From: Eutreptiella sp. 'Long Island Sound 2002' | Lineage: Eukaryota > Protista > Euglenida | Reading direction: 5' to 3' | Assembly: GCA_964036045.1 (NCBI GenBank) | Contig: OZ038378.1 | Coordinates: 199,206,001-199,270,000 of the forward strand | Length of the DNA stretch: 64,000 bases | Part shown: one piece after another, positions 7,773 to 32,355 of the stretch | Position numbering within the stretch: position 1 is the first letter of the stretch | Layout of the letters: each line of letters opens with the position of its first letter | Notes under the pieces: generated by a model | Told to the model about the DNA's origin: nothing | The model's input: the letters and a program-made list of their open reading frames with translations, nothing else | The model's database searches: none | Made by a program: the position numbers and the translations under genes

Positions 7773-8400
7773 AGCATGTTTTAGGCCGTATTTACATGTT
7801 TTTCACCTTATTTGGGTATTGGGCGCAGGGCGGGGCGGGGGGGGGGGGGTCTCCCAAGGGATTGGTACACAACGTGCTCATGCAGTTTTTCACCGTGGAC
7901 AGCTCAAAAATTGAAGTTTTTGAAACTTTTTTTTTATACCATGATCACCTAAAATCACCATCCAAGGTATGTAAAGCATGTTTGAGGCCGTATTTATGTG
8001 TTCTTCACTTCATTTGGGTATTGGGCGGGGGGGGGGGGGGGCTCCTAGGGGGTTTGGAACACAACCTGCTTAGGCAGTTTTTCACCTTGGTTAGCTCAAA
8101 AATCGAAGTTTTCGAAACATATTTTTAATCACCTAAAATGACCATCCAATATACGTAAAGCATGTTTTACGCCGTATTTATGTGTTTCTCACCATATTTG
8201 GGTATTGGGTGCGGGGGGGGGGGGGGGTCCAAACGGGATTGGTACACAACCTGCTTATGCAGTTTTTCACCCTGGATACCTCAAAAATCCGAAACTTATT
8301 TTTTTGATATTGTGATCACCTAAAATTACCATCCAAGATATGTAAAGCATGTTTTAGCCCGTATTTATGTAGTGTTTACCCTATTTTGGGTGTGTGTTCT
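7771..8400 (+). repeat. Tandem satellite, ~185-200-bp unit, about 3.3 copies
   Basis: Units begin AAAGCATGTTT at 7771, ~7973, ~8158 and ~8344. Each has CCGTATTTA..., a poly-G run and GCAGTTTTTCACC...CTCAAAAAT...CACCTAAAAT.ACCATCCAA. Confidence 0.88.
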
Positions 8401-9329
8401 TGGGGTAGGTTCTCTGCGAGGTGGATTTGCCGAAGGCAACAGAATTTGCGGGGCCTTTGCAGTCCACATTTCTTGGTACTACCCAATTGGAGGCTCATAC
8501 ACATGCCATGGATGCTTCAAGAAAAAGGACATGGCAATCGCACATCCTGCGAGGCAAGCAATGCTGCACTGGTTGTCCACAGTCCATGGTGGTGTTGGAG
8601 CAAGGAGTTGTCAGCAATGCTGCTGCAAGGATGCACCAGTGGGTCTAGACAGGGGGCTCCAGGGTAGTCAGCTAGTGGGCCCCCTTTTTTAGTACCCTCC
8701 CAGTGCTAACAGGTGTTCCAAGCATTGGGCATGCTTCAATGGATACTATGATTCCCTAGACATCTGTGGACAGATGCCATACCTTCCTGAAGGCCTCCAC
8801 ATGGATGCTGATTCTTCAAAGGCTTCATGTGTCACAGGGTGCACCGGGGCATATGTGTACGGCTGCATCCATAAGCCCTGATGTGTATGTGGCACTGCAA
8901 GTCACCACGACGCTCCGTTTCAGGACCTGGGCCTATGTTCTGCAGCATGGCACACAACCCAAGATACTTGAAGCAGGCAGTGTGCGTAGTGCGTGCGGTG
9001 TGCAGGCAGCACCCTCATAGTCCCATCCCTGCGCAAGGATGAATCAAAGCATCACGTTTCGCAGTTGAACATTTGAAGTGTTACTCTCTTTGGTCAAAAT
9101 ATGGCTTCTTCATGATAGTGACAAGCATTTCTTGCGAGGGGTAAAGCTTGAAGATCTCTCATGGTGAGATAAAGTTGCTGGAGCAAGGAGATGGGTGAGG
9201 AATAACACCCACCGCCCAACCAATTGTTGAGCTCGCAGGATGGGAATGTTGTATGTAAGATCCCATAGGAGGGTCTGCGTCCTCGTTCACTATCCTCAGG
9301 CCAATGGTCAACGCCAATTCGCCTTGTAG

Positions 9330-9805
9330 GCACTCAATTCCTTGGAGAGGAGTGCCTTCAACACATGACGTGTGATGCAACTGTTGTTTGCAAATGGCTG
9401 CAGAGCATTGGCCTCCCGGAGTACACACTCCGATTCGATCAATACGACGTAGCCGGCTTTCATTTGATTGCGTTATCCGACGACGAGTTAAACTTGGCCA
9501 GTGTTAATGTCACTCATTTGACCTTGTTGTTGCGAGAGGCACTAGCACTGCAATTATTCCCGGAATCACTCCTTGAAGTCTCAACCGTGGAGCACCGCGA
9601 TAGGATCGCTGATGGCATCGAGGAACCTGTCAAAACGAAAGCCGATTTCAACGACGACCCGGCACACAAATATCCTTTTTATGGTGCAGATTATCAGCCT
9701 CCATGCACGGTCATGGATTTCCTCCGAGATCTTCCTGTTGAACAATTTCCCAAGGATCTCATTGATCAGATCATGATAGATTTTAAAAAGGACATGGCTA
9801 TTCAA
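9330..9805 (+). CDS. Exon of the giant gene encoding a SAM (sterile alpha motif) domain plus the helical lead-in to the ART domain
   Basis: Translation VVCKWLQSIGLPEYTLRFDQYDVAGFHLIALSDDELNLASVNVTHLTLLLREA fits the SAM consensus V..WL..IGL..Y...F....I.G..LL.L....L. Acceptor GCCTTGTAG ends at 9329 (alternative AGs at 9268 and 9299). The donor is CAA|GTATGC at 9805/9806. Confidence 0.8.
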
Positions 9806-10840
9806 GTATGCATTCCGTTTTGGATCCTTGTGCACTAAGATCAGCAAATTTTTCTTTCAAGGAAATCCTGCGACTGGACTAGCCCTCCAGAGCTGTCACG
9901 AGCCCATATGACCGAAACTCGCGATTCCAACAGCCCAGCAGCAGACGTTTCATCGAGTAATGTTTCCCGTGCGGGTGCAAACCAACGTGAGAATCTGCGA
10001 CACTGGGGTGGTGCCACTTCTTGACTTCTTGACAAATTGTGCGTCGGTATCCAGCCCACACATGTCTGCAGTAACCTCGCCGAACCCCCCAGAACGACCT
10101 CAAGCCCCCCATGATACCAAGCCCCGAATACCCTGCCCCGTATCGTGACCTCAACCCCAATATGCCCAGTGTCTGCGGGGGCTGTGTCAGGTTGGATCCG
10201 CTTGTCAGTAGCGTGGTGGGGAGGGGAAACTGACTTGAATCCAATGGGTTGGGTTCACACATCGCTGGCCTTGGGGTCCAACTTGTGGTTTGCATCATTT
10301 TTGGTCATTTTTGGGGGACTGGCCCGCAAGAGCTTCGGGTGACCGGCCTGCGACATCATGCAGTGCACATTGCGCTGTTACCATGTGGCATTGTAGGGGT
10401 CGGGGGACGGAGGAAGTGCACGTGAAGGGAACAGAGGCAAGACGCATGGCTATTGCCGGGCAGGGCACAGACGAGGCAGCGCGGGTTCCGCTGGCAGGGG
10501 TGGGGGATGTGGGGGGGGTGGAAGCAGTGGGATAAACCTCGCAGAAAGGCAAAGTTCTCCCAAGGGTGCAGTTGCCAAGCCAGAAACATTGTTATGTCGG
10601 GTGTCCAGTGGCCCAGAATGGAATTAGGCCATAACGACCACAATCAGGCTCTCGGGCGGCCCGTAGCGAAATTCCGGGGTGGTGCACAAACTGTGGGTGT
10701 TTTTTTCCGGTTGGCCCGCCATTTTTCTGGAGTCGGCGCAAGCTGAGGTTGCGTATCTGCAGCGCTGGAAGGGAGTAGAGATCGGGGGTGCTACTGCGCC
10801 GGCTTCCTTGCACTTTCCTCTCTTACACGCGTTGTTGTAG
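9806..10840 (+). other. Canonical GT-AG intron (1035 nt, phase 0) joining the SAM exon to the ART/ARM exon
   Basis: Donor GTATGC; pyrimidine tract and acceptor CTTTCCTCTCTTACACGCGTTGTTGTAG. The acceptor TAG is the in-frame stop just upstream of the big ORF. The spliced read is ...KKDMAIQ|IEVLEERQGELKEEDLLAIYTY... Confidence 0.8.
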
Positions 10841-13800
10841 ATCGAGGTGTTGGAGGAACGCCAAGGGGAGCTGAAGGAAGAGGATCTGTTGGCCATCTAT
10901 ACCTACTCCTACGAACTGAAGTCCAGGCAGGATCCCGCACAGTCTTGGGTGCATCAGATTTATCGAGACATGAATGCGTCCATGCGAAAGCGAGATGAGA
11001 CCGCACTCAACTTGTGGCGGCCGTTCATATTTCACCTGGACAAAGCCCTCGCCAAACTGAGTTGCTTCACGCAGACGCTGTGGCGGGGGGTGGGGGTCAC
11101 GTTTGATGACAGAGTGTACGCGCACGGCGAAATTGTGTCCTGGCCGGCATTCTCCTCCTCGTCGCTGGACATACGCGTCGCGCAGGACTTCTTCATGGGG
11201 AAGGAGCAGGAAGTCCGCGAGGGAGGCACGCTTTTCCTGCTCAAGACCAAGTACGGCCGCCGAGTCTACACCTACTCCAAATTCCCAGAGGAGCGGGAGG
11301 TCCTCTTCCCGTCCAACTCGACGTTCCGTGTCACGCGGCGGCTGACGAAGGAGGAGAAGTCGCAGTACAACACCACCATCGATATTGTGGAACTGGAGCA
11401 GGTCGACGAGCGAGAGTTCGCCCTGGATCCCGCCAGCATCGGGCGCATCGTCAGCTACATGCAAAAGAACCTGAACAGTGCCAGTCACCAGGAGCAGGGG
11501 TGCCGGGACCTCTGGCCGTTTGCTGAATCTCCCGAGCATCGTGTGCAATTCCTGGGCGATGGAGCTTTGACAGTGGTCGTGGAGGCCATGGGGCGCCACC
11601 CCTCCCACGTTGGGGTGCAGGAGCACGGCTGTGGCATCCTCTGCTTCCTCTGCGCCAACCTCACGGACCTCCCCCGTTTCATCAGTGCCGGGGCTGTGGA
11701 AGCGCTACAAAGCGCGGCGTTCCTGCACCAAGCGCACGCGGGCGTGGCGCAACAGGCGTGTACGGCGATGCGCCACTTGACAGCAGCCGGCGGATTCGGG
11801 TCGCTCGGGATCTCCGGCGACGTGGCTGCCATGGTCGTGGAGCTGATGCTCCGTCACGGTCAACAGTTGGGGGTCCAGACCGGGGGCTGCGGTGCCTTGC
11901 ACAACATAACGGGGCATGAATTGTCCGTTGGTGCAGATGGACTGCGGAAAGCTTGCCACGTGGTGGTCCAGGCCATGAAGCTGCACCCCGAAGACGCTGT
12001 CATCCAAGAGCATGGCTGTGGGGTGCTCTCACGCCTCGCTGCGGTGCCAGAGCCGTGGACCGACGGGGGCCAAGTGGAGGCAACGGGTCGTGTCCTGGAC
12101 GCGATGCTCAGTTTTGCAGATCGGGCGGTGCTGCAAGTGAGCGGCTGCGTAGCTGTCCACAGGCTGACTGCTGCGAGTGAGGCTCAACCGGCCGATGCCG
12201 AAAGGGGCATCGAGGCACTCAAGCGTGCCATGGAGACGTATCGCCAGGATGCCGCAGTCGCAGAATCCGCTTGCGGGTCCGTGACCTACTTCGCGCGCGC
12301 CGCAGCTCTGCAGGGGCTGATGTTGCACTCCGAACTGTTCCAGTGCATTGTGAAGGCCATGGGGGAGCACTTGGCAGTGCAAGGGGTGCAAGATCTGGGC
12401 TGTGGGGCATTGAATGAGCTGATGGCCTCAGGGGCTGAGGCGTCAGCCGCCGACATGGGCGCGGCGCTGGAAGTGGTCGTCAAAGCCATGCGGCAGCACC
12501 GCAGACACGCTGGTGTGCAACGGGAAGGCTGCACGTTTTTTGGGCGGTTTCTGGGCGGCGGCGGCGGTCTCGACGAGAGCCGTGGAGGGGAGATCCTTGA
12601 GCGCACGGTGGAGGCCATGCAGCACCACGGCACCAACGTCCGCATTCAGGAGTGCGGCTGTCACGTGCTGGCCAGGCTGGCGGCGGGGGACGCGAGGCAG
12701 GTCGTCAGCACTCGCAAGGCTGTCGCCGTTGGAGTGGTCCTCGCTGCCATGAGCCGGCACCCCTCCCAGGCGCTACTGCAGCAGCATTGCTGCGTCTTTT
12801 TCTCGATGGTCCCGGTGGACGCCTCCCATGGGCTCATGCAAGCCCTCAAGTCTCTCATCGAGGCTCTGCGCCTGCATCGCCATGTGGAAGGCGTGCAGCT
12901 TGCAGGTTGCAGTGCCCTGTGCAGTTGTGCCGCCGAGGCCTCTGCGAGCGTTGCAATGGTGGAAATGGGGGTGCTGGGGGTGATTGCGGGGGGCATGCAG
13001 GCGAACCGCGCGCATGCGGCCGTTCAGCTGCACAACTGCAAGGCACTCGCGATGCTTGGGCCCCACGTCACCGACCAGTCCGACATGACGTTCGTGGGCG
13101 CCGTCTCCATGATTTTGGACGCCATGGGCCGCTTTGAGGACGACGCTGGGCTTCAACGGAGTGCCTGTGAGGCTTTGCTTTCATTTCTGGGCGACCCCGC
13201 TCGATTACGCGATATGTTTTCGCAAAGCGTGCAGTCCACGTTGCATGCCATGAAGCTGCACCCCGAAGACGCTGTTATCCAAGAGCATGGCTGTGGGGTA
13301 CTCTCACGCCTCGCTGCGGTGCCAGAGCCGTGGACCGACGGGGGCCAAGTGGAGGCAACGGGTCGTGTCCTGGACGCAATGCTCAGTTTTGCAGATCGGG
13401 CGGTGCTGCAAGTGAGCGGCTGCGTAGCTGTCCACAGGCTGACTGCTGCGAGTGAGGCTCAACCGGCCGATGCCGAAAGGGGCATCGAGGCACTCAAGCG
13501 TGCCATGGAGACGTATCGCCAGGATGCCGCAGTCGCAGAATCCGCTTGCGGGTCCGTGACCTACTTCGCGCGCGCCGCAGCTCTGCAGGGGCTGATATTG
13601 CACTCCGAACTGTTCCAGTGCATTGTGAAGGCCATGGGGGAGCACTTGGCAGTGCAAGGGGTGCAAGATCTGGGCTGTGGGGCATTGAATGAGCTGATGG
13701 CCTCAGGGGCTGAGGTGTCAGCCGCCGACATGGGCGCGGCGCTGGAAGTGGTCGTCAAAGCCATGCGGCAGCACCGCAGACACGCTGGTGTGCAACGGGA

Positions 13801-16800
13801 AGGCTGCACGTTTTTCGGGCGGTTTCTGGGCGGCGGCGGCGGTCTCGACGAGAGCCGTGGAGGGGAGATCCTTGAGCGCACGGTGGAGGCCATGCAGCAC
13901 CACGGCACCAACGTCCGCATTCAGGAGTGCGGCTGTCACGTGCTGGCCAGGCTGGCGGCGGGGGACGCTGCACTGCCAGCGCTGCTGGCCCCCGACTCCA
14001 TGCAGGTGCTGCTCGACGCCATGGCGGCCCAATCCCAAAACGTGCCCCTGCTGCTGGACGGCTGCGGTGTCCTGGAGGCCCTCGCAAGCCATGCCCCGTC
14101 GCAACACCACATCGTCGCCAGCGGCGGCCCGGCCGCGATGGTGGCGGCGCTGCGCCAGCACCCGCTGGAGGAGGCCCTGCAGGAGTTGGGCTGCACGGCC
14201 CTGTGCCGTATCGCTGCGGCAGAAGGCGGTCCGGGGGCGCTGGCGGAGGCGGACGCCGCGCAGGCGCTGGTGGCGAGCATGGGGCAGTACCCAGGCCACG
14301 GGGCCATGCAGGCGCACGGCTGCCAGGCACTGCGGCTGCTCGCCCACTACGTCCAGCAGCGCAGCCCCACTACCCCTGCACCCGCGGCTGGCCATGCTCA
14401 CGTCTCGGTGGAGGCGGCCTCCCGGGAACAGGTCACGGGTGCTCACGAAGCCGCTCCTCCGGCCGAAGCCCCAGAGCCCATCCAGCCACCGCTGCCCAAC
14501 ATGTCAGGCGCCGTCCGTGTGCTCCTGGCTGCTCTGCAGCAGCACCCCGAGCAGCCGAGCCTTGCCGAGGACGTGTGCCGCGCGCTCGGGCACCTCCTTG
14601 TTGATCCTCGCACGGCCCCCGCGTTGGTGGAGGCCGGGGCTGTGGACCACCTGCTGGGCCTCATGCGCAGCTCCCTCGCAGCCAGGCCCCTGCTGGAGGC
14701 CGCCACGGCGGTCCTGTGCGTGGTGCTCGAGGACGTGCCGGCCGTGGCGGGCCCACTCGCTGCTTCAGGGGCCGTATCGCTCACTGTGAGCACGCTCCAG
14801 CGGCACAAGGACAGTGGGGACCTGCAGCAGCACGGCTGTCGGATGCTGCGGGTGCTGCTGGACCCTGCCCTGACTGGGGCTGGAGCTTTTGCGGAACAGG
14901 CAGTGGAGACCGTCCTGCAGGCGATGTGGCGCCACCCGGACCGCTCCCAGCTGCAGGCGGCGGCCTGTGGCATCCTCCGCGCGGTGTCCTCGGCGGGCAA
15001 TGGTGTTGAGCTCTTGGCCACAGCGGGGGCGATCCGCCCCGTGACGGGGGCTATGCAGCGCCACCCGCAGGAAAGCGACATCCAGGAGCCCGGGTGTGCG
15101 CTTCTTGGCCAATTTGTGGCCGTCGACCGGTTAATCGCACGCGTCCTGGAGGCCGGAGGTGTACAGGCGATCCTCCAGGCGATGCAGCAGCAGCCGCACG
15201 CGACCGGCGTGCAGGCGACGGGCTGCGCGGCGCTGCAGCGGCTGGCGGGGCACGTCGCACTGTGGTCGGGCGCCGAAGGCCTGGACGCGGGAGTGGCGCT
15301 GCTGGAGGTACTCCGCGTGCACGTGACCGATGCCGCCATTCCGGGGGCCGCGTGCGCCGTCCTCTGCCGGCTGGCCGCCGCAGCTCCGGACCTGCAACCG
15401 CGCCTGGCCGCCCCAGAGGCCCTGCAGTCGGTCCTCGGGGCCCTTCAGACGCCGGCCCCGAGCCCCGAGCTGCTGGCGGACGGCTGCGCGCTGCTGTGCC
15501 TGGTCCTGGGCGGCCGGGAGGGCGACTCCCCGGCCCCGGCGCTGCCGCCGCGGCTGCTGGGGGACCTGTGCGCTGTGGGGCTGGCGGCGCTGCAGTGCAG
15601 CCCCGCGCCGGAGGGCCCACAGGCGGCGGCCTGCACCCTGCTGGCGATCCTCAGCGGCACCGGGGCCGGCCGGCAGACGATCTGCCGCCTGGGCGCGGCG
15701 GGGCCTGTGCTGCAGGCCATGGCGCAGGGCGGCGCCGCTCTGGGGCTGCAGCGGGCCGCCTGCCGGCTGCTGTACCACCTCCGTGACTGCCTCTGGCCCG
15801 GCCCCCCGCCGCCCGCCCTCGAGCCCGTGGTCGCGCCCCCCGAGCCCCGCGGCACGTCCCCGCCCTCATCCCCCCGCCCGCCCCTGTCTCCGCGCCCCGG
15901 TGCGTGCCCCCCCGCTCCCCCCGTGGGCAGCGCCCTGGTGCTGGTGGTGCAGGCGCTGCACCGCCACCCCGACTGCGAGCGGCTGCAGATGTACGGGACC
16001 GGGGTCCTGCTTGGCCTGCGCGCCCACGCGGAGGCCTGGCGGCTGCTGCCGGAGGCGGTGCCGGCGCTCGTGGACGGGATGCGGCGGCACGGGCCCAGTG
16101 CGGTGGTGCAGGCGCACGCGTGCAGCCTCCTGGCGCTGCTGGCGGCGGAGCCCGCGCTCTGCGGCCGCATTGCGGTCGCCGGGGGCGTCGCCGCCGTCTG
16201 CGGGGCCATGGGGCAGCACGCGGCCGACCCGGCGCTGCAGGAGTCGGGCTGCGCGGCCCTGCAGCACTTGGCCAGCCCCGGCGGCGCGGACGGCGACGAG
16301 GCGGCCGCGCGCGCGGTCCTGCAGGCGATGCGGGGCCACCGCGGGCACGCCCTGTGCCAAGAGCAGGCGTGCACGGCCCTGTGGGCCTGGGCGGAGGACG
16401 GCGAGCGCCGGGCGGCGCTGCGGCGGGAGGGCGCCCTCGAGGCCGTGCAGGAGACCCTCGCGCACAACACTGAGCCGGAGCGGCTGCAGAGCCTCGCGCT
16501 GCGGGCCCTGGCGCGCCTCACGCTCGCCGGGGCCGACGGCCTGAAAGCCGCCGCGCGTGCTGACCTCGTCCTGCAGGCGATGCGGGCCTACGGGGGCAGC
16601 GCCGCCGTGCAGGCGCACGCGGCCGGCGTCCTGTGGCACGCGGCGCTCGCGGAGGGCGGGGCCGGGCCCGTGGTTGCGGCGGGGGCCGTGGAGGTGCTCG
16701 TGGTGGCGCTGCGGGCGCACGCCGAGCCACCGAAGCTGCACGTGCATGCCTGCGGGGCCCTGGGGTGCGTTGCCGCCCACGGCCATGCGGCAGGTGTGGC

Positions 16801-25800: not shown

Positions 25801-28800
25801 CGGTGACGTGTGGGAGGTCGCAATGGCCACCCTCCGGGCCCTCGTGCCGGGCACGGCGGTGGCCGGCTTCGCGGCAGTGATGGCGGCCATGCAGGAGCAT
25901 CTCGCAGCGTTGGGGCAGTTGTCCTCGCGCGCCCCGATGGCGCGGGCCTCCCTGTGCGCCGCCGTGCTGCTGACCCTGGAGCTCCACCCGGGGGCCAAAC
26001 TGCGGCGCTTCTCGGAAGAGCTCATCCTGCACTACGGCATTGAGAAGCCCCGGGGGCCGGTGCTGGGGCTGGGCCCGGTGCTGCAGCTGATGCTGCAGAG
26101 CCCCGCCGATGCCGGTGTCCAGAGGGACGGCTGCCGGTTCATGCGGTGCGTGTTGGCCGCCGCGGCCGCGCCCGCTCCGGCCTTTGCCGACGCGGGGGCC
26201 ATCCCGGCCGTCCTGCGGGCGCTGCAGAGGCACCGGGACAACCGGGACGTCGCGGACGGGGCCTGTGGGCTGCTGCAGGCGGCCGCGGACCTGCCGGCGC
26301 TTCGGTGGTCCGCGGTCAACGGCGGGGCAGTGGAGCAGGTGCTGAGGGCCATGGTGGCGCACCAGCAGGACCCGGGCCTCCAGGAGCGGGCGTGTGGGGC
26401 GCTGCAGGCACTCGCCGGGGGGGCTCAGCTTGCGGAGCTTGCGACGGCCGAGTGCCTGGCGGCGTTGCTGGGCGCCCTGCAGGCCCACCGGGCCCACACA
26501 GGCCTCCAGAGGGCGGTCTCCGAGCTGGGGCTCAGTCCAGTGGCGCAGCTGATGCTGCGCAGCGGCACGGGTCTCGCCGTCCACATGGACGGCTGCCGGT
26601 TCATGCAGTGTGCCCTGTCCGCTTTGGCCGCCCCGTCCCAGGCCTTTGCGGAGGCGGGGGCCATCAAGGCCATCGTGCAGGCGCTGCAGGCGCACGCCGC
26701 CGATGGGGCCCTGGCGCGACGCGCGTGCGAGCTGCTGCGGGCCGCCGCAGAGCTGCCGCAACTGCAGTGGGCTATGGTGACCGCTGGGGCAGTGTGGACG
26801 ATTCTCAAGGCCATGGTGACGCATCGTGAGGAGGTGGGCATTCAGGAGACAGCCTGCGGGCTGCTGCAGCTGCTGGCAGGGGAGGAGACCGCACTCGGGG
26901 AGCTGGCCCACACCGAATACGTGGACGCCCTGCTGGGCGCTCTGCGGGCACACCCCGACAGTCGCAGTATCAGGGGTACCGTTTGCGCGCTGATGTCACG
27001 GATCGTGGAGCACATACAGCGAGAAGACGCGGGGGAGGCCTGGGGGCTGGTGGTGGCGGCGATGCAGGAGCATACCGACCAATCGGAAGTCCAGGCCATG
27101 GGCTGCAAGACTATGGGCACCATTGCACACTGCCTCGCCGCGGACTGGGATTGGAGTATAGGCACCGAGGCTTTGCTGATGGCCATGAAGAGGTACCCTG
27201 ACGATGCGGCGCTGCAAGGCGTGGGCTGTTGGGCGATCAGCAAGCTGACGGAGATCGCCCCGTGTCGGCCTTGCCTGGTCAGCGCCGGTGCGAGGGCGCT
27301 GATGGTAGGGGTACGGCAGCGGCATGTGGGCCACCTGCGGGTGCAGGAGCACTGCAGTATCGCCCTGGCCAAGCTGCCGGAGAGATCGCCCGATAAGGGC
27401 GTTGGAGGAAAGGGGAGGGGGGCGCGGAGGAGCAGCCCCTGGCAGGGCAACCGGGAGAACGCGCAGCCGGACGGGCAGCACATGCACCTCCCCATGCCTC
27501 CGGCGCAGCAGTGCCGGGGGCAGGACCATCAGGAGGACGAGGAAGAGGACAGCGACAATGACGATGATGACGAGGAGGAGGAGGAGGAGCAGGAGGAGGA
27601 GGAGGAGGAGGACGTGGGGGGGGACTGGGGTGAGGAGCAACGGAGGGGGGCGGACTGGGAACGTCATGCTGCCGACCAGAAGAACAGGAGGTCAAAGAAG
27701 GACGAGAACGAGAGGCAGACGAGGGGGCGAAAGCAGAGGAGAAAGCGGGGCAAGAAAGGCCGAAGGCAGAGCCCCAGGGCGGTGTCCTCGGCCTCGCCCG
27801 TGGGCCAGAGGATAGGAGACCCGCGCAACTCCTCCGCCATCAGTCCCAGGCCGCCGGGAGAATCGCCCAGGACAAGGCAGCGGGCGAACAGCCCCGACGG
27901 GGCATGGCTCACTCAGCGGGCGTCACTGGAAGCGAGCTTGCAACTGAGGCGCGATGCGTCGATGCAGAGGTCGGGGATGGGCAAAGGCGGGCAGTGGCGT
28001 GAGGGCGCGGACGCGCTGCAGGGCGCGTCCACCCAGATCGACGCGCTGGAGCGGCGCCGTAGACGCATGCAGTACAACCCCAGTGTCGGTGTGCCGGTGC
28101 GCCCCAGTGCCCGGGCCCGTCCTGCGAGCGCGGACCCGCTGCTGGAGAAGAGGCAGATGCGACAGCGGATGCTGCAGTACACCCCGACGCGTGGCTCCTC
28201 GCCGCGCCGCACCAGACCCCCTGCAACCCCCGACCCGACGGCCCGGCGCCCGCGACCCCCGCCCAAGAGCCCGGAACCCCCGGGGGATCCCGGGCCCCAC
28301 CGCACGCCGCGCAAACCACCGTCGCCCGGTCCAACGGCCCACCCGCCCCCAGTCCCGGTCCCGACGGAGCCGGACCCGTTGTCGGGGATGATGGCAGCAG
28401 CCGCACAATGTGACGCCTTAGGCCCGGAGGACCCCGCAGATGGGGACCTCCTGGAGTACATTGTGAAGACCATGAGGTCGCACGCGCTCCGTGAGGGCGT
28501 CCAGGAGTACGGCTGCCGAGCCCTGCACGCGCTCGCGCGGCATCCCCAGGGCCGGGCTGGGACGGTGGGGGTGGTGGAGGCAGTGGTGCAGGCCATGAAG
28601 CTGTTCGACGCGCACGAGACCATCCAGCGCCTCGGTGTCGAGCTGCTGCAGCAGCTTCTCCCCGCCCTGGCGCCGCGGATGCCCCTCGGCACGCTCCGGG
28701 GGGTTTCTCTGGTGGTGGTACTGGCCATGCGGACGCACGGATACCAGCCCCTCCTGCAGCAGAGCGCGTGCGGCCTACTGGCGGTCCTGGCGGCGCGGGA

Positions 28801-31354
28801 GGGGCCCCTGCAGGAGGAGAGCGCGTCGTGGGTGGACGCCGTGGTGGCGGCCATGCAAGCGCATGCGGCGAACCCGGAGGTGCAGCTGTGGGGCTGCCGC
28901 GCCCTCGTGCCGCTGCTGAGGCTGCACGGCCCGGCGGCGGGCGCGGGCGCGGGCGCGGAGGTTGTGGCGGAGGCTCTCAGGCAGCACCAGCCCGACACCC
29001 GCGTGCTCGAGGCGGCGTGCGAGGCCTTGCAGGCCCTGTATGCGGGGGGCTGCCCGGCGGAGCGGCGGACCGTGGCGCTGCTGACGCGGGCCATGGGCCA
29101 GCACCTGCAAAGCGCGGCCCTGCAGGCACATGGCTGCGGGGCACTCCACGCCCTGGCCCGCGCAGAGGGAGGGCACGCGGCGGTGCAGGAGGCGGTGGGC
29201 GCCGTGACCGCGGCGCTCCAGGCACACCCGTCCTGCCCCACAGTGCAGGCGCAGGGGCTGGGGATGCTGCAGTGGGCGCTGGAGCCGTGCCACGGGCCCC
29301 CGGAGGCTGGAGCGGCGTTGGTGGCGGTGGTGGTGAAGGCGTTGGGCCGGTACGAGGGGGACGCCGGAGTGCAGGCGCCGGGGGTGCAGGTGCTGCGGCA
29401 CCTGGCGGCGCAACCGGACAACCATCTGGTGCTCGGGGACGAGGGGGCGGTGCAGGTGCTGGTGGCGGCGGCACGGCAGGCCCTGCGGCAGGCGGCCCCT
29501 GCGGATGCAGCGCCTTTGCAGGCGACCTCTGGCCATGCGGCCTGTGCGCATGCGACTGCTGCGAGCGTCGTGGAGGTAAGCTGCGCTGCACTGGCGGACA
29601 TCGCAGATGGAGCCCAGGGCGCAGCACGTGTCGGGGCGGGCGGGGCTGCCGAGGTGGTGTTGGAGGCCATGGGGCGCCACGCAGGCCGTGCCGTGCTGCA
29701 GGAGCAGGGCTGTCGGTTACTGGCGGCGTTGCTTGCGTGGCCGCAGTGGCAGGGGCTGCAGCAGGCACTGGAGGCAGCGCTGGCGGCGATGGCAGGGCAC
29801 AGCGCGGCGGCTGCCGTGCAGGCGTCAGCCTGCAGAGTCTTGCTCGGGCTGGTGGCCGCCGGGGCTCCGCCCCCGGCGCCCCCCGCGGCCGCAGTCTGTG
29901 CTGCGGCCGGCGCGGCGCTGGAGGCGCACCCCGGCGACGCCGGGCTGGTCGCGGACTGCTGCCGGCTCCTGGCGCACTTTACGTGTGATGCCGGGCCGCC
30001 GGCCGCCGCAGCCGCGACCTGGTGCCTCGTGCCCCTCGCAATGGGGGCCCATCCCACCGACCTCCTGGTCCAGGGGCACGGCGCGCGGTGCCTGGCGGGC
30101 CTCGTGCGGCAGGGGCTGGGCGACGGGCAGTGGGTGGTGGTGCTGATGCGGGCGCTGCAGGAGCACCCCCGGGCGGAGGGCGTGCTGCGGCACAGCCTCG
30201 CGGCGCTGCACGGCCTCGCCAGCGCTGCGGGGGCGCCCGGCCGCTGCTGCATGGCCAAGGGGAGCGCCAGCGTGGCCCAGGCCATGCGCGACCACCCCCG
30301 GCACCGCGACATCCAGCGGCACGGCTGTGCGCTGCTGTGCGCGATCGCACAGGAGACCGCCGCGGCCCGCGAGATGGTGGCGTCGGGGGCCCTAAGCCCC
30401 GCGACCGCCGCCGTGCTCGACGCGATGCGCGGCGACTCCGAAGGGGGCGACGTCCGCGACGGCGCGCGGGCCGCGCTCCGGGGCCTGGCGCTCGGAGTCT
30501 ACAACCGCGCGTTGCCGGCGGAGGGGCAGGCAGCGGCGGCCGCAGCGGCCGCGGCCCGGCTCATGCGGCAGTGGGCCACGAACCGCGCGATCCAGGCGCA
30601 CGGCTGCGCGGCGCTGCAGGAGCTCGCGTGCGTGTGCCCCACCGCGACCTCCGGCGCCGAGGCAGTGGCGGTGCCGGCGGTGCTGTCCGCAATGCAGGAG
30701 CATCCGGACCACCAGGACATCCACGATGCCGGCGGTGCGCTGCTGCGGGGGTGGGCCCAGCAGCCTCCGACCCGCTGCCTGATCGATCAGCACCGCGGCG
30801 TAGCCATCCTCCTGCGGAGTCTGAGGGCGCAGGCGGATTCCGCCCCCGCGCAGGAACACGGGTGCGCGGTACTCGCCGCCCTGGCCGCCCATTTGGGCCG
30901 TGCGAAGGCGATCCTGGAGGACGGGGGCCTGGACGTCGCGCTGGCGGCACTGAGGCGGCACACGGGGGCCGCGGCCGTGCAGGAGCAGGGGTGTGAGCTT
31001 GTGGGCCAGCTGGTCACGCAGGGGGGCCGAAGGGAGGAGGCACACGCGGCAGGGGCCGTGGAGGCGGTCCAGGCGGCGGCCGCGCAGCATCCCTCGCACT
31101 CGGGCGTGCAGGCGAGTGCCGCCCGCGCCCTGCGGTGCCTCGCGTCCCGCGCCAACAGCTGCGACGACGCGTTCCAGCGGACGGTGGCCCTCCTGACATC
31201 CGCGACCCCTGAGGCCAAGTCCTCCGGGCCCGGGGCGCCTCTGAAGGCTAAGCCCACACCCAAGTCCCTGCCAACGCCCAAGCCCAAGCCCAAGCCCAAG
31301 CCCAAACCAAAAGTACCCGCTCTGATGCCGGGGAAGCCCAGCGCTCTGCCCTGA
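10841..31354 (+). CDS. Giant exon (6,837 codons plus stop): ADP-ribosyltransferase domain, very long armadillo-like repeat array, disordered linker, second ARM block and PK-rich tail
   Basis: A 20.5-kb stop-free frame with strong GC3 bias and a coherent repeated unit (..V..AM..H....VQ..GC..L..L..). The GTG start at 10847 in the ORF track is an artefact; the exon starts at 10841. Confidence 0.93.
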   Translation: MEVLEERQGELKEEDLLAIYTYSYELKSRQDPAQSWVHQIYRDMNASMRKRDETALNLWRPFIFHLDKALAKLSCFTQTLWRGVGVTFDDRVYAHGEIVSWPAFSSSSLDIRVAQDFFMGKEQEVREGGTLFLLKTKYGRRVYTYSKFPEEREVLFPSNSTFRVTRRLTKEEKSQYNTTIDIVELEQVDEREFALDPASIGRIVSYMQKNLNSASHQEQGCRDLWPFAESPEHRVQFLGDGALTVVVEAMGRHPSHVGVQEHGCGILCFLCANLTDLPRFISAGAVEALQSAAFLHQAHAGVAQQACTAMRHLTAAGGFGSLGISGDVAAMVVELMLRHGQQLGVQTGGCGALHNITGHELSVGADGLRKACHVVVQAMKLHPEDAVIQEHGCGVLSRLAAVPEPWTDGGQVEATGRVLDAMLSFADRAVLQVSGCVAVHRLTAASEAQPADAERGIEALKRAMETYRQDAAVAESACGSVTYFARAAALQGLMLHSELFQCIVKAMGEHLAVQGVQDLGCGALNELMASGAEASAADMGAALEVVVKAMRQHRRHAGVQREGCTFFGRFLGGGGGLDESRGGEILERTVEAMQHHGTNVRIQECGCHVLARLAAGDARQVVSTRKAVAVGVVLAAMSRHPSQALLQQHCCVFFSMVPVDASHGLMQALKSLIEALRLHRHVEGVQLAGCSALCSCAAEASASVAMVEMGVLGVIAGGMQANRAHAAVQLHNCKALAMLGPHVTDQSDMTFVGAVSMILDAMGRFEDDAGLQRSACEALLSFLGDPARLRDMFSQSVQSTLHAMKLHPEDAVIQEHGCGVLSRLAAVPEPWTDGGQVEATGRVLDAMLSFADRAVLQVSGCVAVHRLTAASEAQPADAERGIEALKRAMETYRQDAAVAESACGSVTYFARAAALQGLILHSELFQCIVKAMGEHLAVQGVQDLGCGALNELMASGAEVSAADMGAALEVVVKAMRQHRRHAGVQREGCTFFGRFLGGGGGLDESRGGEILERTVEAMQHHGTNVRIQECGCHVLARLAAGDAALPALLAPDSMQVLLDAMAAQSQNVPLLLDGCGVLEALASHAPSQHHIVASGGPAAMVAALRQHPLEEALQELGCTALCRIAAAEGGPGALAEADAAQALVASMGQYPGHGAMQAHGCQALRLLAHYVQQRSPTTPAPAAGHAHVSVEAASREQVTGAHEAAPPAEAPEPIQPPLPNMSGAVRVLLAALQQHPEQPSLAEDVCRALGHLLVDPRTAPALVEAGAVDHLLGLMRSSLAARPLLEAATAVLCVVLEDVPAVAGPLAASGAVSLTVSTLQRHKDSGDLQQHGCRMLRVLLDPALTGAGAFAEQAVETVLQAMWRHPDRSQLQAAACGILRAVSSAGNGVELLATAGAIRPVTGAMQRHPQESDIQEPGCALLGQFVAVDRLIARVLEAGGVQAILQAMQQQPHATGVQATGCAALQRLAGHVALWSGAEGLDAGVALLEVLRVHVTDAAIPGAACAVLCRLAAAAPDLQPRLAAPEALQSVLGALQTPAPSPELLADGCALLCLVLGGREGDSPAPALPPRLLGDLCAVGLAALQCSPAPEGPQAAACTLLAILSGTGAGRQTICRLGAAGPVLQAMAQGGAALGLQRAACRLLYHLRDCLWPGPPPPALEPVVAPPEPRGTSPPSSPRPPLSPRPGACPPAPPVGSALVLVVQALHRHPDCERLQMYGTGVLLGLRAHAEAWRLLPEAVPALVDGMRRHGPSAVVQAHACSLLALLAAEPALCGRIAVAGGVAAVCGAMGQHAADPALQESGCAALQHLASPGGADGDEAAARAVLQAMRGHRGHALCQEQACTALWAWAEDGERRAALRREGALEAVQETLAHNTEPERLQSLALRALARLTLAGADGLKAAARADLVLQAMRAYGGSAAVQAHAAGVLWHAALAEGGAGPVVAAGAVEVLVVALRAHAEPPKLHVHACGALGCVAAHGHAAGVAAAGGLLAVLSSLDRHQGDALVVEEGLGLLRALVELRAQELVAADGVRVVVRAMRRHGAEGALQAQGCAVLGQLMLLGVEAGLLAEAGAMGAVAEALAAHADRAELPSVGLEVLRALTAAPQHCSAADTPVVCKAVLRGMRASPGDAALQAKGCTAAHHLSRAPGRAPAVAETGLISAMLGAMGQHAADACVQEQACGAIWHLSLDAGSQGRVAGAGAHAGVLRAMQGHRGRPGVQQAGCGVLQGLAAAPDSLSLLLAAGAVRAVAEALQAHAAHLGVQVQGMAALHALALTPEGAQAVGRAQGAELALQAMLGHRAELPAQETGCRLLQALAGEGAWHETPRDCGLEAVLAAAQRFPDAPALLRAVCGVLGWLPARGDAAAPAPELEAVLGMLRRHPADRALQEAGLHALHGLVPGPCAPAGVPSEAIGHAVVASMRLGPDCPGVQERGCRVLRRLLGAPQGQEAVLQTGALALVWAALRRHPAHAALQEAGCDVLAALDLTHVARPASQTDDTVAGLVSAMRHHIADARFLERACDAVRALAREDAWQQQLLGAGALDVVTEGLQMHLGSPELQEHATAALVCLSRPPGLAAPGVAFVEAVIAAMDRNCTHAAVQANGCAVLAHAAAAVGASEELCTAAAACAVAALAHHAAAVDVVCQAMTALSCAAGPALASWPVGEVEAAALVAAFARHAAHPGVHLHGCRALRCLAQSPGARAALTAKGAGGAVLQAMARHLPQVDLQEAACRALQALLEDPALLGWVAGADALQGVLQALHRHPAQAGLQHQGLAVLCRMAAAPAAVPRLRAAGACLVARRSVEQAPDHELVRQEGERLLWALREAGAGVGARTGLQADFQLIVATMQQHPSVQLIQADAVQALLMFSGDSECCRAMATRAIAEAMSKAMARGGKHRHVQAGGCRLLNRLLDQGLQDLDLGLALTGGLKMMQGHPLDAEVQAEGSQLLCRLSHAAGELAEPSRVRSVTAVMKALQGHPLSGPVQMWGSQVLSHVAEAPELCPGLREAGAGLALLDALARHAAAAEVVRAAAAALGLLIAAEPAAYPGAWEALAAALQRHAGDAGVVQHCCAALCPLTGGGLGLAAAVVAELVPPVLDGLHQQPHDPDVQAQGCRLLCSLGPAAVGGHAVAHPERWVALLDTLRASCAEAAQEEVCSLVHTLALTPAGAPCLAEAAVQTAVEGMRRHTPAVGVQEKGCEALLAWAERALDAAAAGGGVGAVVAAMQQHPAQASLQELGCRALRALLPVADAPLEVHGNGAFTLGSAAGGLALRPAAETPDVKVLAAVVQAMQLQPTHRDLQALGCGLLRDLLGSAECRVWCGVEGPGAAVLASVLQRYPQCPATQGPGSQALCLLAAERAAHAALWAAQGVEAVRTVLRCGDARTQCNGCGAVANLAAGPEAALRLVAAGVRGDVAGAMSRALRQPEVQLLGCIALWKLGAATNTPMAPAPETAVLAAVVAAMQAHPTDCSLQGHACHALLSFLGASRDVLDQTPAVVTLVLAAMRAHPADPRVQEKGCQVLLEVRGQGPGPGAAAAVDGGALEVVVAGMYEHAAHAAIQEAACGVLLWLVGLPALEEWSLTATVTLPVQRALARHPGSRALQDVGTTLLARFGLPPPNPATPVTYGLTTVIQEMEQPQASAGTLALACRIVQHLADTDALCPQEVGRAMRLVAEAMQRHPRDAALAEHACRALGALASHADAADRTPAVETVVGVMQLHMDRPGVQEEGCRALHRLLSPPHPQPGVPRAVEAVLGAMRRFEDCARVQEHGAAAMLGLVALGADAGPGAEPLIEAGALRVLAQAMTQHAEDAGVQQQCCRALRTLGAQRGPNLRAAVMQALQRHTDHWLLQADGCAVLRALAGGWAAAPGAAACALGLAVAAVTRHGARRSVVVEACWLAVRIAGKEGVPVEAEEARGLAEGVLRALRAHPHDEALQEAGFAALEAVPVLGAGAATRIAAALAEALQQYASNTALLSYGLGALLGLVRATPQPAELQAVAAAALPAVVHAMGQPPPKGLQAQGRSCALLRHCGMPCPADLAPERLVTAVLDAIRQHRDPPAPAPAPAPAREPQTAQVVELQEDACHVLSAVMASATALPAPLMAEAWVEVAASLQCHMASPAIRGPALALLAALLRAPWTPAAPHATAAADAILQALQHADCDAGARQHCCAILHGIGAVLPPEQATRAAAVLVTTLQHHREHAALQALACAALQTLAEAPEARALMLQADAVHVVVAVMQRHLQSEAVQQHGCRLLQALVMEAGEDLAGPLEVVTRSLGAFPEHAQLQEDGCRALLLIVSAQPSYRSLVAQGGGFDEVVSAMARHVDSPALQEHAARLVGALAQACARAGPPPRWARACDALLAAMRRHPASLPVQDAACGAVRTLIREMAEWPGAAGQEALVDALVETMRCHSAQAALQREACEILCHLAAAPVLQEPRLGHVVGALVAMLEAHQANEAVQEAGCRCLGRVAAHGPASRARLADDWAMVRLLEALWLHPDSAALQGEACGVLRHLAADPALRPRLCDMGAPGRVVAAMLRFPRSAALQRDGCAALWGLSSLCNAAGLPAVLAALQHHPQDRAVLLPGVGALAAWAGRADTRPGAARPDTVAAVLQAMQQEPGHAALQEACCAFAAALAADPSARLHVTSAPLPDAPPELALPPVPATAAVPGVAWRVLGALQRHPWHAGVQAAAPHALTQLLQTREAWRWLQDEGGLAGLVAGAMRQHPDSAAVQGPCCRALCALLDGACPPSEYPGLAPLLWHALARHEGLLDVQAPAAAALWALLPRAGHPPCPPHAVAAAIAAMRAHPLHAGLQADGTGLLVCAVRSPAAFPPALRAAALEAVFAAMGSPEAAAATQEHGLRLLADTSLRPERGEFGPRAVAAVVRAMAQHLPATALVEAGCRFLCHAAASPALRAELATSGALGLLCNAMRTHRQHPVVQLHSCETLRALAADDAVRAAVLRAGGGLLAVEVLRQHAQSGDVWEVAMATLRALVPGTAVAGFAAVMAAMQEHLAALGQLSSRAPMARASLCAAVLLTLELHPGAKLRRFSEELILHYGIEKPRGPVLGLGPVLQLMLQSPADAGVQRDGCRFMRCVLAAAAAPAPAFADAGAIPAVLRALQRHRDNRDVADGACGLLQAAADLPALRWSAVNGGAVEQVLRAMVAHQQDPGLQERACGALQALAGGAQLAELATAECLAALLGALQAHRAHTGLQRAVSELGLSPVAQLMLRSGTGLAVHMDGCRFMQCALSALAAPSQAFAEAGAIKAIVQALQAHAADGALARRACELLRAAAELPQLQWAMVTAGAVWTILKAMVTHREEVGIQETACGLLQLLAGEETALGELAHTEYVDALLGALRAHPDSRSIRGTVCALMSRIVEHIQREDAGEAWGLVVAAMQEHTDQSEVQAMGCKTMGTIAHCLAADWDWSIGTEALLMAMKRYPDDAALQGVGCWAISKLTEIAPCRPCLVSAGARALMVGVRQRHVGHLRVQEHCSIALAKLPERSPDKGVGGKGRGARRSSPWQGNRENAQPDGQHMHLPMPPAQQCRGQDHQEDEEEDSDNDDDDEEEEEEQEEEEEEDVGGDWGEEQRRGADWERHAADQKNRRSKKDENERQTRGRKQRRKRGKKGRRQSPRAVSSASPVGQRIGDPRNSSAISPRPPGESPRTRQRANSPDGAWLTQRASLEASLQLRRDASMQRSGMGKGGQWREGADALQGASTQIDALERRRRRMQYNPSVGVPVRPSARARPASADPLLEKRQMRQRMLQYTPTRGSSPRRTRPPATPDPTARRPRPPPKSPEPPGDPGPHRTPRKPPSPGPTAHPPPVPVPTEPDPLSGMMAAAAQCDALGPEDPADGDLLEYIVKTMRSHALREGVQEYGCRALHALARHPQGRAGTVGVVEAVVQAMKLFDAHETIQRLGVELLQQLLPALAPRMPLGTLRGVSLVVVLAMRTHGYQPLLQQSACGLLAVLAAREGPLQEESASWVDAVVAAMQAHAANPEVQLWGCRALVPLLRLHGPAAGAGAGAEVVAEALRQHQPDTRVLEAACEALQALYAGGCPAERRTVALLTRAMGQHLQSAALQAHGCGALHALARAEGGHAAVQEAVGAVTAALQAHPSCPTVQAQGLGMLQWALEPCHGPPEAGAALVAVVVKALGRYEGDAGVQAPGVQVLRHLAAQPDNHLVLGDEGAVQVLVAAARQALRQAAPADAAPLQATSGHAACAHATAASVVEVSCAALADIADGAQGAARVGAGGAAEVVLEAMGRHAGRAVLQEQGCRLLAALLAWPQWQGLQQALEAALAAMAGHSAAAAVQASACRVLLGLVAAGAPPPAPPAAAVCAAAGAALEAHPGDAGLVADCCRLLAHFTCDAGPPAAAAATWCLVPLAMGAHPTDLLVQGHGARCLAGLVRQGLGDGQWVVVLMRALQEHPRAEGVLRHSLAALHGLASAAGAPGRCCMAKGSASVAQAMRDHPRHRDIQRHGCALLCAIAQETAAAREMVASGALSPATAAVLDAMRGDSEGGDVRDGARAALRGLALGVYNRALPAEGQAAAAAAAAARLMRQWATNRAIQAHGCAALQELACVCPTATSGAEAVAVPAVLSAMQEHPDHQDIHDAGGALLRGWAQQPPTRCLIDQHRGVAILLRSLRAQADSAPAQEHGCAVLAALAAHLGRAKAILEDGGLDVALAALRRHTGAAAVQEQGCELVGQLVTQGGRREEAHAAGAVEAVQAAAAQHPSHSGVQASAARALRCLASRANSCDDAFQRTVALLTSATPEAKSSGPGAPLKAKPTPKSLPTPKPKPKPKPKPKVPALMPGKPSALP
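10880..11405 (+). other. NAD:arginine-type (ARTC, R-S-E clade) ADP-ribosyltransferase domain
   Basis: Motifs AIYTY...IY..MN.SMR; LWRG (Arg codon 11084-11086); WPAFSSSS (STS-like, ~11153); KFPEEREVLFP with ExE at 11291 and 11297; C-terminal strand IDIVELEQ. Confidence 0.9.
11972..12693 (+). repeat. Recent intragenic duplication, copy A (722 bp)
   Basis: Matches 13247-13968 at an offset of 1275 nt (425 codons), with only 6 differences found by eye. Confidence 0.95.
13247..13968 (+). repeat. Recent intragenic duplication, copy B (722 bp)
   Basis: See copy A; the reading frame is preserved. Confidence 0.95.
26063..26990 (+). repeat. Older tandem duplication of a 154-codon ARM block
   Basis: LGLGPVLQLMLQS...DGCRFMRC...AFADAGAIPAV...GAVEQVLRAMVAHQ aligns with LGLSPVAQLMLRS...DGCRFMQC...AFAEAGAIKAI...GAVWTILKAMVTHR. 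Offset 462 nt (26063 vs 26525). Confidence 0.85.
27371..28430 (+). other. Intrinsically disordered linker with an acidic tract, a basic NLS-like cluster and a Pro-rich segment
   Basis: 27533-27613 encodes EDEEEDSDNDDDDEEEEEEQEEEEEED; 27728-27766 encodes RKQRRKRGKKGRR; 28190-28380 is Pro/Arg-rich. Confidence 0.8.
28440..31150 (+). other. Armadillo-like repeat solenoid, block 2 (~900 aa), followed by a PK-repeat tail at ~31241-31320
   Basis: The same repeat consensus resumes at LLEYIVKTMRSHALREGVQEYGCRAL. The tail reads KPTPKSLPTPKPKPKPKPKPK. Confidence 0.85.
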
Positions 31355-32355
31355 GCCAAGGTGCCCGGGTTGTTGCAACCGAGATGCAGTGCAACCGACG
31401 CCGACTACATCGTGCAGCACAGCCCAACCCCATGCGCTGCGCGGCTCCGTAGGACCCGCCCCGATCCACTCATGGGACCCACCCACATTCGATGTGTGAT
31501 GCCGTTGGACCGGCCCGCCTTTGTGAGGCCGTGGGGCCTGCCCACGCACGATGTGACCCGACGACCCCAATGCCCTAATGCACTGCTCTGTGCCCCAGCC
31601 CTCTGTGGAATCCGGTTTTGCCCGCCCCCCCACAGCCCCCCTCCCGGCTCACTTGTCCGCGAAGGGCGGATTCCTGTACTTGTGTATGTATGTAGAAGCA
31701 TTCAATCTTGCGTGCTACTCCTAAAGACTCAGCCCTACCTCACCATCTAGCTATTTCCCCAGCCATTCATCTGCGTCATCCTCCGTGTCATCTACCCGGT
31801 GTACTGAGGCGAGCGGCACATCTCCGAGGTACAATGACAGACCGCCCTCGACACGGCACTGACCCTTCTATTGACCCTTCTATTCGTTGCTGCTGTTGTA
31901 TGTCCTGCATGTCGTCCCCGATCGCTTGCCGCTTGCTGCCGGACGCAAGACAGCCGCTTGCCAGATCCCAACAACCCGTCGGCGCATGCCGAGCCCCTCT
32001 CGCATGAACAATGCTATGGGATTTCCTTTTGACACAGACCTGATTTCGGGTGCCAAATGGCTTGCTTCAGGCCACCTCCCCTCAACTGACCCGACTGGAC
32101 AACACTGACCAAAGGGGCCAACAAAGGCCACAGCCCTAAAACAGAACACCGCCATCATCCAAAGAGGCGCCGCTGCACCCACATGCGGCGGCGGTTGAGG
32201 TTATTGCAGGCGTGCCCAGGGCTGCATTAGGACGGAAATTTATTGACGAGGAGATACCCTCACTGCCCCCCCCCCCCCCCCAGCAGTGACAAAATGTTGT
32301 CAGAGCAACGCGTTTCTGTACAGTGCTGTTTTCCCTTTTGCCAGCCCTATGGATC

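Follow-up and report, generated by a model that had tools for sequence, protein, structure and literature searches.

A euglenid gene joining SAM, ADP-ribosyltransferase and LRRK2-type ARM repeat domains in one very large predicted protein

The 64,000-nt stretch of Eutreptiella sp. 'Long Island Sound 2002' analyzed here, referred to as the window (G000:C1:199,206,001-199,270,000 of a 2.28-Gb genome), contains an uninterrupted open frame of 6,835 codons (10847-31354; coordinates without a contig prefix are window positions). This locus raises the question of whether a frame of such length belongs to one functional gene and, if so, what kind of protein it would produce. A preliminary description, made from the letters alone, had proposed that an upstream exon carrying a SAM domain is spliced in frame to an ADP-ribosyltransferase (ART) domain followed by a very long array of ARM repeats, yielding a giant SARM1-like product. 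The results presented below show that the locus holds a genuine nuclear gene of a euglenid alga and that this gene is expressed, and they suggest that its product is a cytosolic ART tethered to an ARM scaffold.

The proposed splicing event was checked with reads placed on the region 7200-12900 of the window (RNA runs including X1 and X2, and the DNA run X9). RNA contig X1 record 5 (1,144 nt) joins 9453-9805 to 10841-11631 with zero mismatches and in phase 0, which is exactly the in-frame junction between the SAM exon and the ART exon that had been proposed. The RNA depth was zero over 9874-10828 in both runs, and a contig of the DNA run X9 was contiguous over 8410-12001. The splice donor (CAA/GTATGC, 9805/9806) lies within the open reading frame (ORF) 9365-9838, which holds the coding part of exon 1, and the acceptor (TTGTAG/ATC, 10840/10841) is preceded by a polypyrimidine tract. 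Further RNA contigs cover 11624-11860 and 11972-12685, and X1 record 7 has a loose end identical to 13217-13246, showing that the second copy of an internal duplication (see below) is transcribed as well; overall, the RNA covers exon 2 over 10841-11860, 11972-12685 and the second duplicate copy. As to the 5' end of the transcript, the RNA contigs of X1 and X2 begin at 9305 and 9299, respectively, and cDNA contig X5 record 17 (2013) starts at 9299 with 22 loose letters ahead, TTCTGAGTGTCTATTTCTTTTC. This sequence occurs in euglenid spliced-leader papers, including that of the Eut-SL of Eutreptiella sp. (PMC3621762), and differs from the published leader by one T-to-C change in a T-run. The presence of a spliced leader before 9300 indicates that the mRNA is trans-spliced at the AG at 9298-9299 and that exon 1 is indeed the first exon. 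In addition, four estuary metatranscriptomes contain 35-52% of the words sampled from 9300-12300. The leader, this estuarine RNA and the best outside match of the gene, in Euglena gracilis, are all consistent with a euglenid such as Eutreptiella.

The nature of the long frame in exon 2 had to be considered in the light of its base composition, because long chance ORFs are common in GC-rich DNA (75-80% GC) and antisense ORFs of up to 1,407 aa are found here. The G+C content climbs from about 50% to 70-80% between 10 and 31.4 kb of the window, whereas the DNA flanking the gene is about 48-53% GC. In each 1.2-kb block of exon 2, the G+C content at third codon positions (GC3) was 0.74-0.98 vs 0.41-0.59 at second positions (GC2), while the intron was flat by codon position (0.54-0.58). 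Because GC3 greatly exceeds GC2 in every block and the intron shows no such periodicity, the long frame of exon 2 is not a chance ORF of GC-rich DNA. GC3 also rises steeply within the gene: it is 0.50 in exon 1, 0.77 where exon 2 begins and 0.90-0.98 in the central part of the ARM array. The spliced product has 147 + 6,837 = 6,984 aa (723.8 kDa, isoelectric point 6.3, Ala 20%), in agreement with the giant size that had been anticipated. A further copy of the gene is located at C2:175.1 Mb, where the ART match is 100% identical and is contained in a 6,835-aa open frame; this copy is 99.8% identical over the 3.65 kb compared, intron included. The protein of another public assembly (P0001) keeps the frame over 6,833 aa and departs from that of the window by only 22 substitutions and an indel of one PK unit in the tail. 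The 20.5-kb frame is thus intact in two copies or more; those on C1 and C2 may be alleles, homeologues or products of a segmental duplication. The features of the locus are collected in Table 1.

Table 1. Features of the SAM-ART-ARM locus, given as window positions
Feature	Position	Strand	Basis or content
Trans-splice acceptor AG	9298..9299	+	mRNA body from 9300; X5 record 17 and RNA contig starts
Upstream ORF (uORF), 23 codons, out of frame	9304..9375	+	Read from sequence; overlaps main ATG at 9365
Exon 1 coding part, 147 aa	9365..9805	+	Start codon, SAM, linker, N-terminal extension of ART module
SAM domain, aa 5-66	9377..9562	+	Pfam SAM_1/SAM_2, profiles vs PDB
ART N-terminal extension, aa 78-147	9596..9805	+	Motif invariant across paralogues and Euglena homologues
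Intron GT..AG, 1,035 nt, phase 0	9806..10840	+	Sequence; RNA junction; zero RNA depth
Exon 2, 20.5 kb, 6,837 codons + stop (TGA/TAA class, 31352-31354)	10841..31354	+	Open frame, codon bias, partial RNA
ART catalytic core, R-S-ExE	10841..11422	+	PF01129, alignment, AF2, Foldseek
Catalytic codons R229, S253, E298, E300	11084-11086, 11156-11158, 11291-11293, 11297-11299	+	
137 LRRK2-type ARM repeats, 42-43 aa each, aa 342-6924	11423..31171	+	PF23744, repeat HMM
Duplication copy 1, repeat units 5-10	11969..12693	+	blastn
Duplication copy 2, repeat units 15-20	13244..13968	+	blastn; also transcribed
Non-repeat insert, 347 aa, aa 5666-6012	27395..28435	+	Repeat-HMM gap, composition
C-terminal Pro-Lys-rich tail with (PK)n run	31250..31351	+	Translation

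The ART domain carries the main evidence on the likely function of the protein. It matches PF01129 with 61.3 bits (cut-off 22.3) and also passes PF03496 (26.1 vs 23.4), and R229, S253 (within an SSSS stretch) and E298-R-E300 occupy the catalytic positions in alignments with rat ART2.2 and the bacterial toxin Vis, in agreement with the R-S-ExE assignment of the preliminary description, which had also placed the catalytic glutamate correctly at 11297 (E300). All 85 homologues spanning the ART core have the R and the S; one Glu is retained in 82 of them and the other in 83. The core was modeled by AlphaFold2 (AF2) with a confidence score (pLDDT) of 89.8 (32-sequence alignment A1), and a Foldseek search with this model returned Vis, HopU1, Tre1, XopAI, Certhrax, C3 and ART2.2 as the best solved matches, with 118 ART chains of the PDB matching at E<=0.001 and Vis being the best (7.5e-11). 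The domain is thus a member of the ART fold by model and fold search, and the three top matches, Vis, HopU1 and Tre1, are arginine-specific ARTs. Human ART5 is tabulated with the same triad strings, RGV/SSS/ERE (PMC7955679). Judged from the alignments, the catalytic triad is an intact one of the R-S-ExE type, and catalytic activity is predicted.

The ART module appears to begin upstream of the Pfam model, with an N-terminal extension that shows the motif R-x-x-D-G-I ... F-Y-x-x-x-Y-x-x-P ... L-P. Ten residues of this extension (R80, D83, G84, I85, F105, Y106, Y110, P113, L123 and P124) are invariant in paralogues and Euglena homologues, and in the paralogues L021, L023 and L024 the extension directly precedes the ART core in single open frames. 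The extension is therefore part of the ART module, which in the gene of the window is split by the intron, and this provides independent support for the junction between 9805 and 10841. SAM begins at residue 5 and leaves no room for a signal peptide, the ART region contains one Cys, and no 19-residue window of the protein exceeds a Kyte-Doolittle value of 1.85, i.e. there is no hydrophobic segment. Because a signal peptide and a hydrophobic segment are lacking and the ART region has a single Cys, so that the disulphide cysteines of the ecto-ARTs are absent, the enzyme does not qualify as a secreted or glycosylphosphatidylinositol (GPI)-anchored ecto-ART; the ART is predicted to be intracellular and the protein cytosolic.

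The SAM assignment, for which a profile search had been advised, held up. The domain scored 30.7 bits with SAM_1 (PF00536, cut-off 23) and 30.6 bits with SAM_2 (PF07647, cut-off 20.5), and the single sequence matched the SAM of liprin-beta1 at 1.9e-7. When a four-sequence profile (A3, the SAM domain and three relatives) was compared with the PDB, liprin-beta1 was found at 1e-21, the second-best solved match was the SAM of SARM1 (4e-15, covering the full domain), and further solved matches were caskin, Shank3 and DGK-delta. The nearest solved relatives include oligomerising SAMs, namely those of SARM1, caskin, Shank3 and DGK-delta. A complex prediction with three copies of aa 1-77 gave a score of 0.01 with an uncertain fold of the partners and was used neither way. 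In the genome, the exon encoding SAM and the extension matches only four or five loci.

The ARM array begins at residue 342, with no linker after the ART core. The core motif Q-x(2,3)-[GAC]-C recurs with a modal spacing of 43 aa and further peaks near about 85-86, 127 and 172, and an iterated hidden Markov model (HMM) of the repeat detected 137 units at i-E<0.01 (145 at E<1) reaching residue 6924, values that fall within the earlier estimate of 130-145 repeats. Each of five blocks scanned matches the LRRK2 ARM repeat family (PF23744) with 96-138 bits (cut-off 26.2); blocks of the array also match ZER1-like and ARMC5 ARM models, and LRRK2 ARM is the only solved relative of the array (5e-9). The unit core is conserved (A12, M/L13, H16, Q23, G/A26, C27, L30, L33) and the surface positions vary, the mean pairwise identity of units being 26.6%. 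His occupies unit position 16 in 95 of the 137 units and Cys position 27 in 100 of them, the overall composition being about 3% Cys and 4% His. No unit offset shows raised identity except offset 10, a signal that is due to one recent in-frame 725-bp duplication (99.0% identity, offset 1,275 nt) by which units 6-9 equal units 16-19; a weaker block likeness links units 107-109 with units 111-113. A recent tandem amplification of the array was considered and rejected, since there is a single DNA-level duplicate and identity is raised at offset 10 only. From its sequence pattern, the array is best described as old, diverged and maintained, and if extended it would be on the order of 100 nm long. 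The repeats are interrupted by a 347-aa insert with an acidic run, a basic R/K cluster and a Pro/Ser/Arg-rich stretch, which is probably disordered. That this insert might be an in-frame intron was rejected on codon bias, which is kept there (GC3 0.83 vs GC2 0.59). Pfam scans of the whole protein revealed only SAM, ART and ARM types, with no TIR, NTPase (NACHT/NB-ARC included), kinase, PF00644 or ankyrin matches.

We then asked how special this combination of domains is within the genome. The ART head matches at least 151 places, most of them within large open frames, and Pfam scans of paralogues and library homologues revealed a variety of architectures: SAM-ART-ARM in L021, SAM-ART-PAS-PAS in L022 (G000:C1:162848480-162858370), Kelch-ART in L023 and P0004, ANK-ART-kinase in L024, WWE-ART in L025, L038, P0014 and P0021, RCC1-WWE-ART in P0010, ART-WD40 in P0056, ART-ANK in P0133 and ART-ANK-cNMP-binding in P0100. 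The count of paralogues with the SAM-ART-ARM layout, which the preliminary description had left to be made, is one: L021, a single uninterrupted frame of 3,240 aa that lacks an intron at the position of 9805/10841 and has at least 39 units (39 in the part examined). The other 17 paralogues examined have no ARM units near the ART, and ARM relatives in the genome are few. In L022, one exon (1379-1993) encodes SAM (57 bits) together with the ART extension, and the next (3362-4825) encodes the ART and two PAS domains, the intron lying at about the same place as that of the gene in the window; as a compact protein of the SAM-ART-sensor type, L022 would be the easier one to work with. In the nearest paralogues, the ART is followed by ARM repeats or by PAS sensor domains. 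The best match outside the species is Euglena gracilis EG_transcript_3722 (P0002; EukProt EP00667 P003713), an RCC1-SAM-ART protein with an ART 54% identical, which places the SAM-ART core in at least two euglenid genera. L021, L022 and the E. gracilis protein have SAM, N-terminal extension and ART core in common, with ARTs 49-54% identical, but they differ in the attached module, L021 having fewer ARM units, L022 PAS domains and the E. gracilis protein an RCC1 propeller at its N-terminus. Since at least 151 copies of the ART are found on many different recognition and sensor modules, the ART looks like a general output domain of the lineage rather than one special to the SAM-ART-ARM gene.

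Several observations concern the family as a whole. Many ART matches are paired or tripled with identical scores across contigs (e.g. C12/C21, C2/C26, C23/C26/C1094) and a tandem ART cluster is located at C20:1.13-1.29 Mb, a pattern that points to recent duplications of large size or to haplotypes left unmerged in the assembly. ADP-ribosylglycohydrolases of the ARH type (PF03747) are encoded at no fewer than 12 loci on the main chromosomes, and these enzymes may serve the expanded ART family as erasers; a few ARH matches lie on small contigs and could be contaminants.

The comparison with SARM1 stood as a parts list, since both proteins have an ARM-type solenoid, a SAM domain (that of the window gene matching the SARM1 SAM at 4e-15) and an NAD+-using catalytic domain, but it failed for domain order and effector. 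SARM1 has the order ARM-SAM-SAM-TIR and about 8 repeats, whereas the protein described here has the order SAM-enzyme-ARM, one SAM, an ART fold instead of TIR and 137 repeats of the LRRK2-like ARM type; with no TIR, a single SAM and a C-terminal ARM array, it falls outside the SARM1 family. Tankyrase combines ankyrin repeat clusters, a polymerising SAM and a catalytic domain of the ART fold (PARP), with the repeats recruiting substrates. The logic is the same, i.e. a repeat solenoid, a SAM and an ADP-ribosyltransferase-fold domain in one chain, but tankyrase has an H-Y-E triad (ARTD/PARP) and ankyrin repeats, whereas the Eutreptiella protein has an R-S-E triad (ARTC), ARM repeats and the reversed order and is about five times larger. 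It is not a member of the tankyrase/PARP group, having no PF00644 or ankyrin match and a triad of the R-S-E type; as an analogy, however, tankyrase is the closer functional parallel.

With the ARTC ecto-ARTs (rat ART2.2, PDB 1GXY; human ART1 and ART5), the window protein shares the Pfam model, the R/S-x-S/E-x-E positions and the fold. The vertebrate enzymes are secreted or GPI-anchored and have disulphides, whereas here signal peptide, GPI signal and conserved disulphide cysteines are absent and the ART is embedded in a giant cytosolic multidomain protein, with a euglenid-specific N-terminal extension outside the Pfam model. Vis (4XZJ/4XZK), HopU1 (3U0J) and Tre1 (6DRE) resemble the ART in structure (Foldseek E 7.5e-11 to 1e-8, TM-score 0.57-0.62) and share the ExE ARTT motif, but they are only 20-22% identical, and the Eutreptiella ART comes from a spliced eukaryotic gene that lacks a secretion or injection module and has no adjacent immunity gene seen. 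The repeat units belong to the same family as those of LRRK2 (PF23744) and of hypothetical protist ARM/zf-MYND proteins; metagenomic ARM relatives with the same Pfam set are 400-1,200 aa long, and none has an ART. The protein falls outside the NLR/STAND class as well, there being no NACHT/NB-ARC in Pfam scans of its whole length.

The preliminary description had also suspected that neither the architecture nor the size had been described. In agreement with this, a search of 5.8 billion proteins with a word index that needs shared 5-mers found nothing in the 3,760-11,960-aa class but the copy of the gene itself, both with the ART and with an ARM block as the scored region. Among 1,886 ART homologues of a 1.84-billion representative library, none of those scanned pairs an ART with LRRK2-type ARM repeats, no orthologous giant was present among Euglena transcriptome proteins, and a search of the literature found no description of euglenid ARTs or of a SAM+ARM+ART architecture, nor anything relevant on a chromosome-level genome of a euglenid. 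While the three domain types and the idea of an ART-repeat fusion are known, the architecture and its size appear to be new.

Taken together, these results lead us to favor, with a probability of about 0.55, a reading in which the gene encodes a cytosolic, scaffold-tethered mono-ADP-ribosyltransferase of the arginine type, where we infer that the enzyme is active and arginine-specific, what the ARM array does and that SAM oligomerises. The spliced leader is added at 9300 and exon 1 is joined to exon 2 by removal of the intron, giving a product with the order SAM, short linker, ART module, ARM repeats with the charged insert and Pro-Lys tail. According to this reading, the ART head would use NAD+ to modify proteins. 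The ARM solenoid would recruit or present the substrates or partners, and it may also hold back the catalytic domain next to it, autoinhibition or substrate presentation being plausible because the array directly abuts the ART. SAM would provide self-association or SAM-SAM recruitment and so raise the local concentration. The gene is one member of a euglenid cassette family whose members pair a common ART head with differing recognition or sensor modules. Some points weigh against this proposal. The AF2 model of exon 1 is poor (mean pLDDT 53, 44-54 over SAM; 7-sequence alignment), too poor for a fold search, and hence the identity of SAM rests on profiles. ARTs with an R-S-E triad can also be NADases or modify non-protein targets, so that the motif alone fixes neither the target class nor the arginine specificity. 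The uORF is out of frame and overlaps the start codon. Finally, RNA support spans only about 9300-13960 (the 5' 4.6 kb), the remaining 17 kb of exon 2 resting on the open frame, codon bias and repeat continuity, where non-conventional euglenid introns or post-translational cleavage may occur.

The last of these points, together with the ease with which DNA of 75-80% GC forms long ORFs, antisense ones included, would be expected if the locus did not encode one functional protein but were a GC-rich by-product, a decaying or chimeric gene model or a frame with unrecognised introns. Nevertheless, three-base periodicity is found in the sense frame over all 20.5 kb, insert included, the 137 units are in phase and match a curated Pfam family, an intact frame of identical length is present in an independent assembly and in the C2 copy, the RNA contig is exactly spliced and the paralogue L021 has the same architecture; such an explanation is very improbable and already largely refuted. 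A different view would make the protein chiefly a structural giant scaffold, e.g. of the pellicle, the flagellar apparatus or the nucleus, with the ART as an accessory or regulatory domain. Its size (137 repeats, 724 kDa), the old and diverged array with conserved structural positions, the intact frame in two copies and the expression in environmental samples are all consistent with this, as is the R/K cluster of the insert if its resemblance to a nuclear localisation signal is meaningful. However, the perfect preservation of the catalytic triad speaks for the importance of catalysis, and no orthologous giant is found in Euglena transcriptome proteins or elsewhere, an unusual situation for a core structural protein, and we regard a mainly structural role as unlikely.

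We consider quite unlikely, too, that the protein is a SARM1-like innate-immune or cell-death sensor-effector in which the ARM array detects a cue, SAM assembles, and the ART kills or arrests the cell through a target or through NAD+. Such a switch would agree with the toxins and effectors Vis, HopU1 and Tre1 being the closest structures of the ART, with the SAM profile match to SARM1 (4e-15), with an ART family expanded to at least 151 copies, as is often the case in conflict systems, and with the bona fide sensor domains (PAS) that the sister paralogue L022 has in the ARM position. In contrast, TIR, NACHT/STAND NTPase and death-fold domains are all missing from the protein; the SAM-ART-ARM genes number only two, so that the ARM array is no diversified repertoire; two copies differ at 22 of 6,835 residues; and the detection in four field metatranscriptomes fits constitutive expression, although this is not decisive. 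A broader and similarly speculative proposal is that of a sensor-effector that converged on the logic of SARM1 and tankyrase, in which the ARM array would hold a toxin-type ART inactive until a ligand, a pathogen protein or a metabolic cue arrives and SAM assembly would then switch on arginine ADP-ribosylation or NAD+ use; the gene might then be one arm of a large undescribed euglenid signaling or immune system with ART output, comprising no fewer than 151 ART fusions along with WWE domains as readers and ARH enzymes as erasers.

Regarding the surroundings of the gene, the neighboring ORFs (7601-8125, 31361-31747, 32683-33147, 34084-34866, 44822-46677 and 53352-54332) are without Pfam matches, and on this ground no immunity-like or partner gene adjoins it. 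A high-copy repeat lies just upstream at 7200-8540 (X9 word depth 24,000-234,000 vs about 32 for the gene), with dozens of internal joints and with RNA contigs that map there as well; it is probably a transcribed transposon or satellite-like element. Ahead of the spliced-leader acceptor, at 9014-9180, lies the low-depth RNA contig X2 record 9, which could stem from the outron or the primary transcript, or else from traces of DNA in the library. Within the mRNA itself, the uORF starts 5 nt into the body and may regulate translation of a very costly protein. A second GC-rich stretch is located at 44000-48000 (63-73% GC, negative GC skew), and its minus-strand ORFs of 300-389 aa have no Pfam matches.

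Eukaryotic R-S-E (ARTC-type) ARTs are known mainly as secreted or GPI-anchored ecto-enzymes, and the bacterial ones as toxins. Here, an ARTC-type enzyme with an intact triad is found inside a predicted 724-kDa cytosolic protein, between a SAM domain and a very long ARM array that is among the longest found in the searches made. With 137 units, 27% identity and one recent block duplication, the gene offers a natural test case for the upkeep of very long solenoid arrays. The wider finding of a large intracellular family of toxin-type ARTs in euglenids is, in our judgment, more interesting than the single gene. If the enzymes are active, the SAM-ART-ARM and SAM-ART-PAS proteins would be tractable entry points to this family, with a small head, clear catalytic residues and obvious mutant controls, and euglenids would run a large intracellular arginine-ADP-ribosylation system on a toxin-type fold rather than on PARPs.

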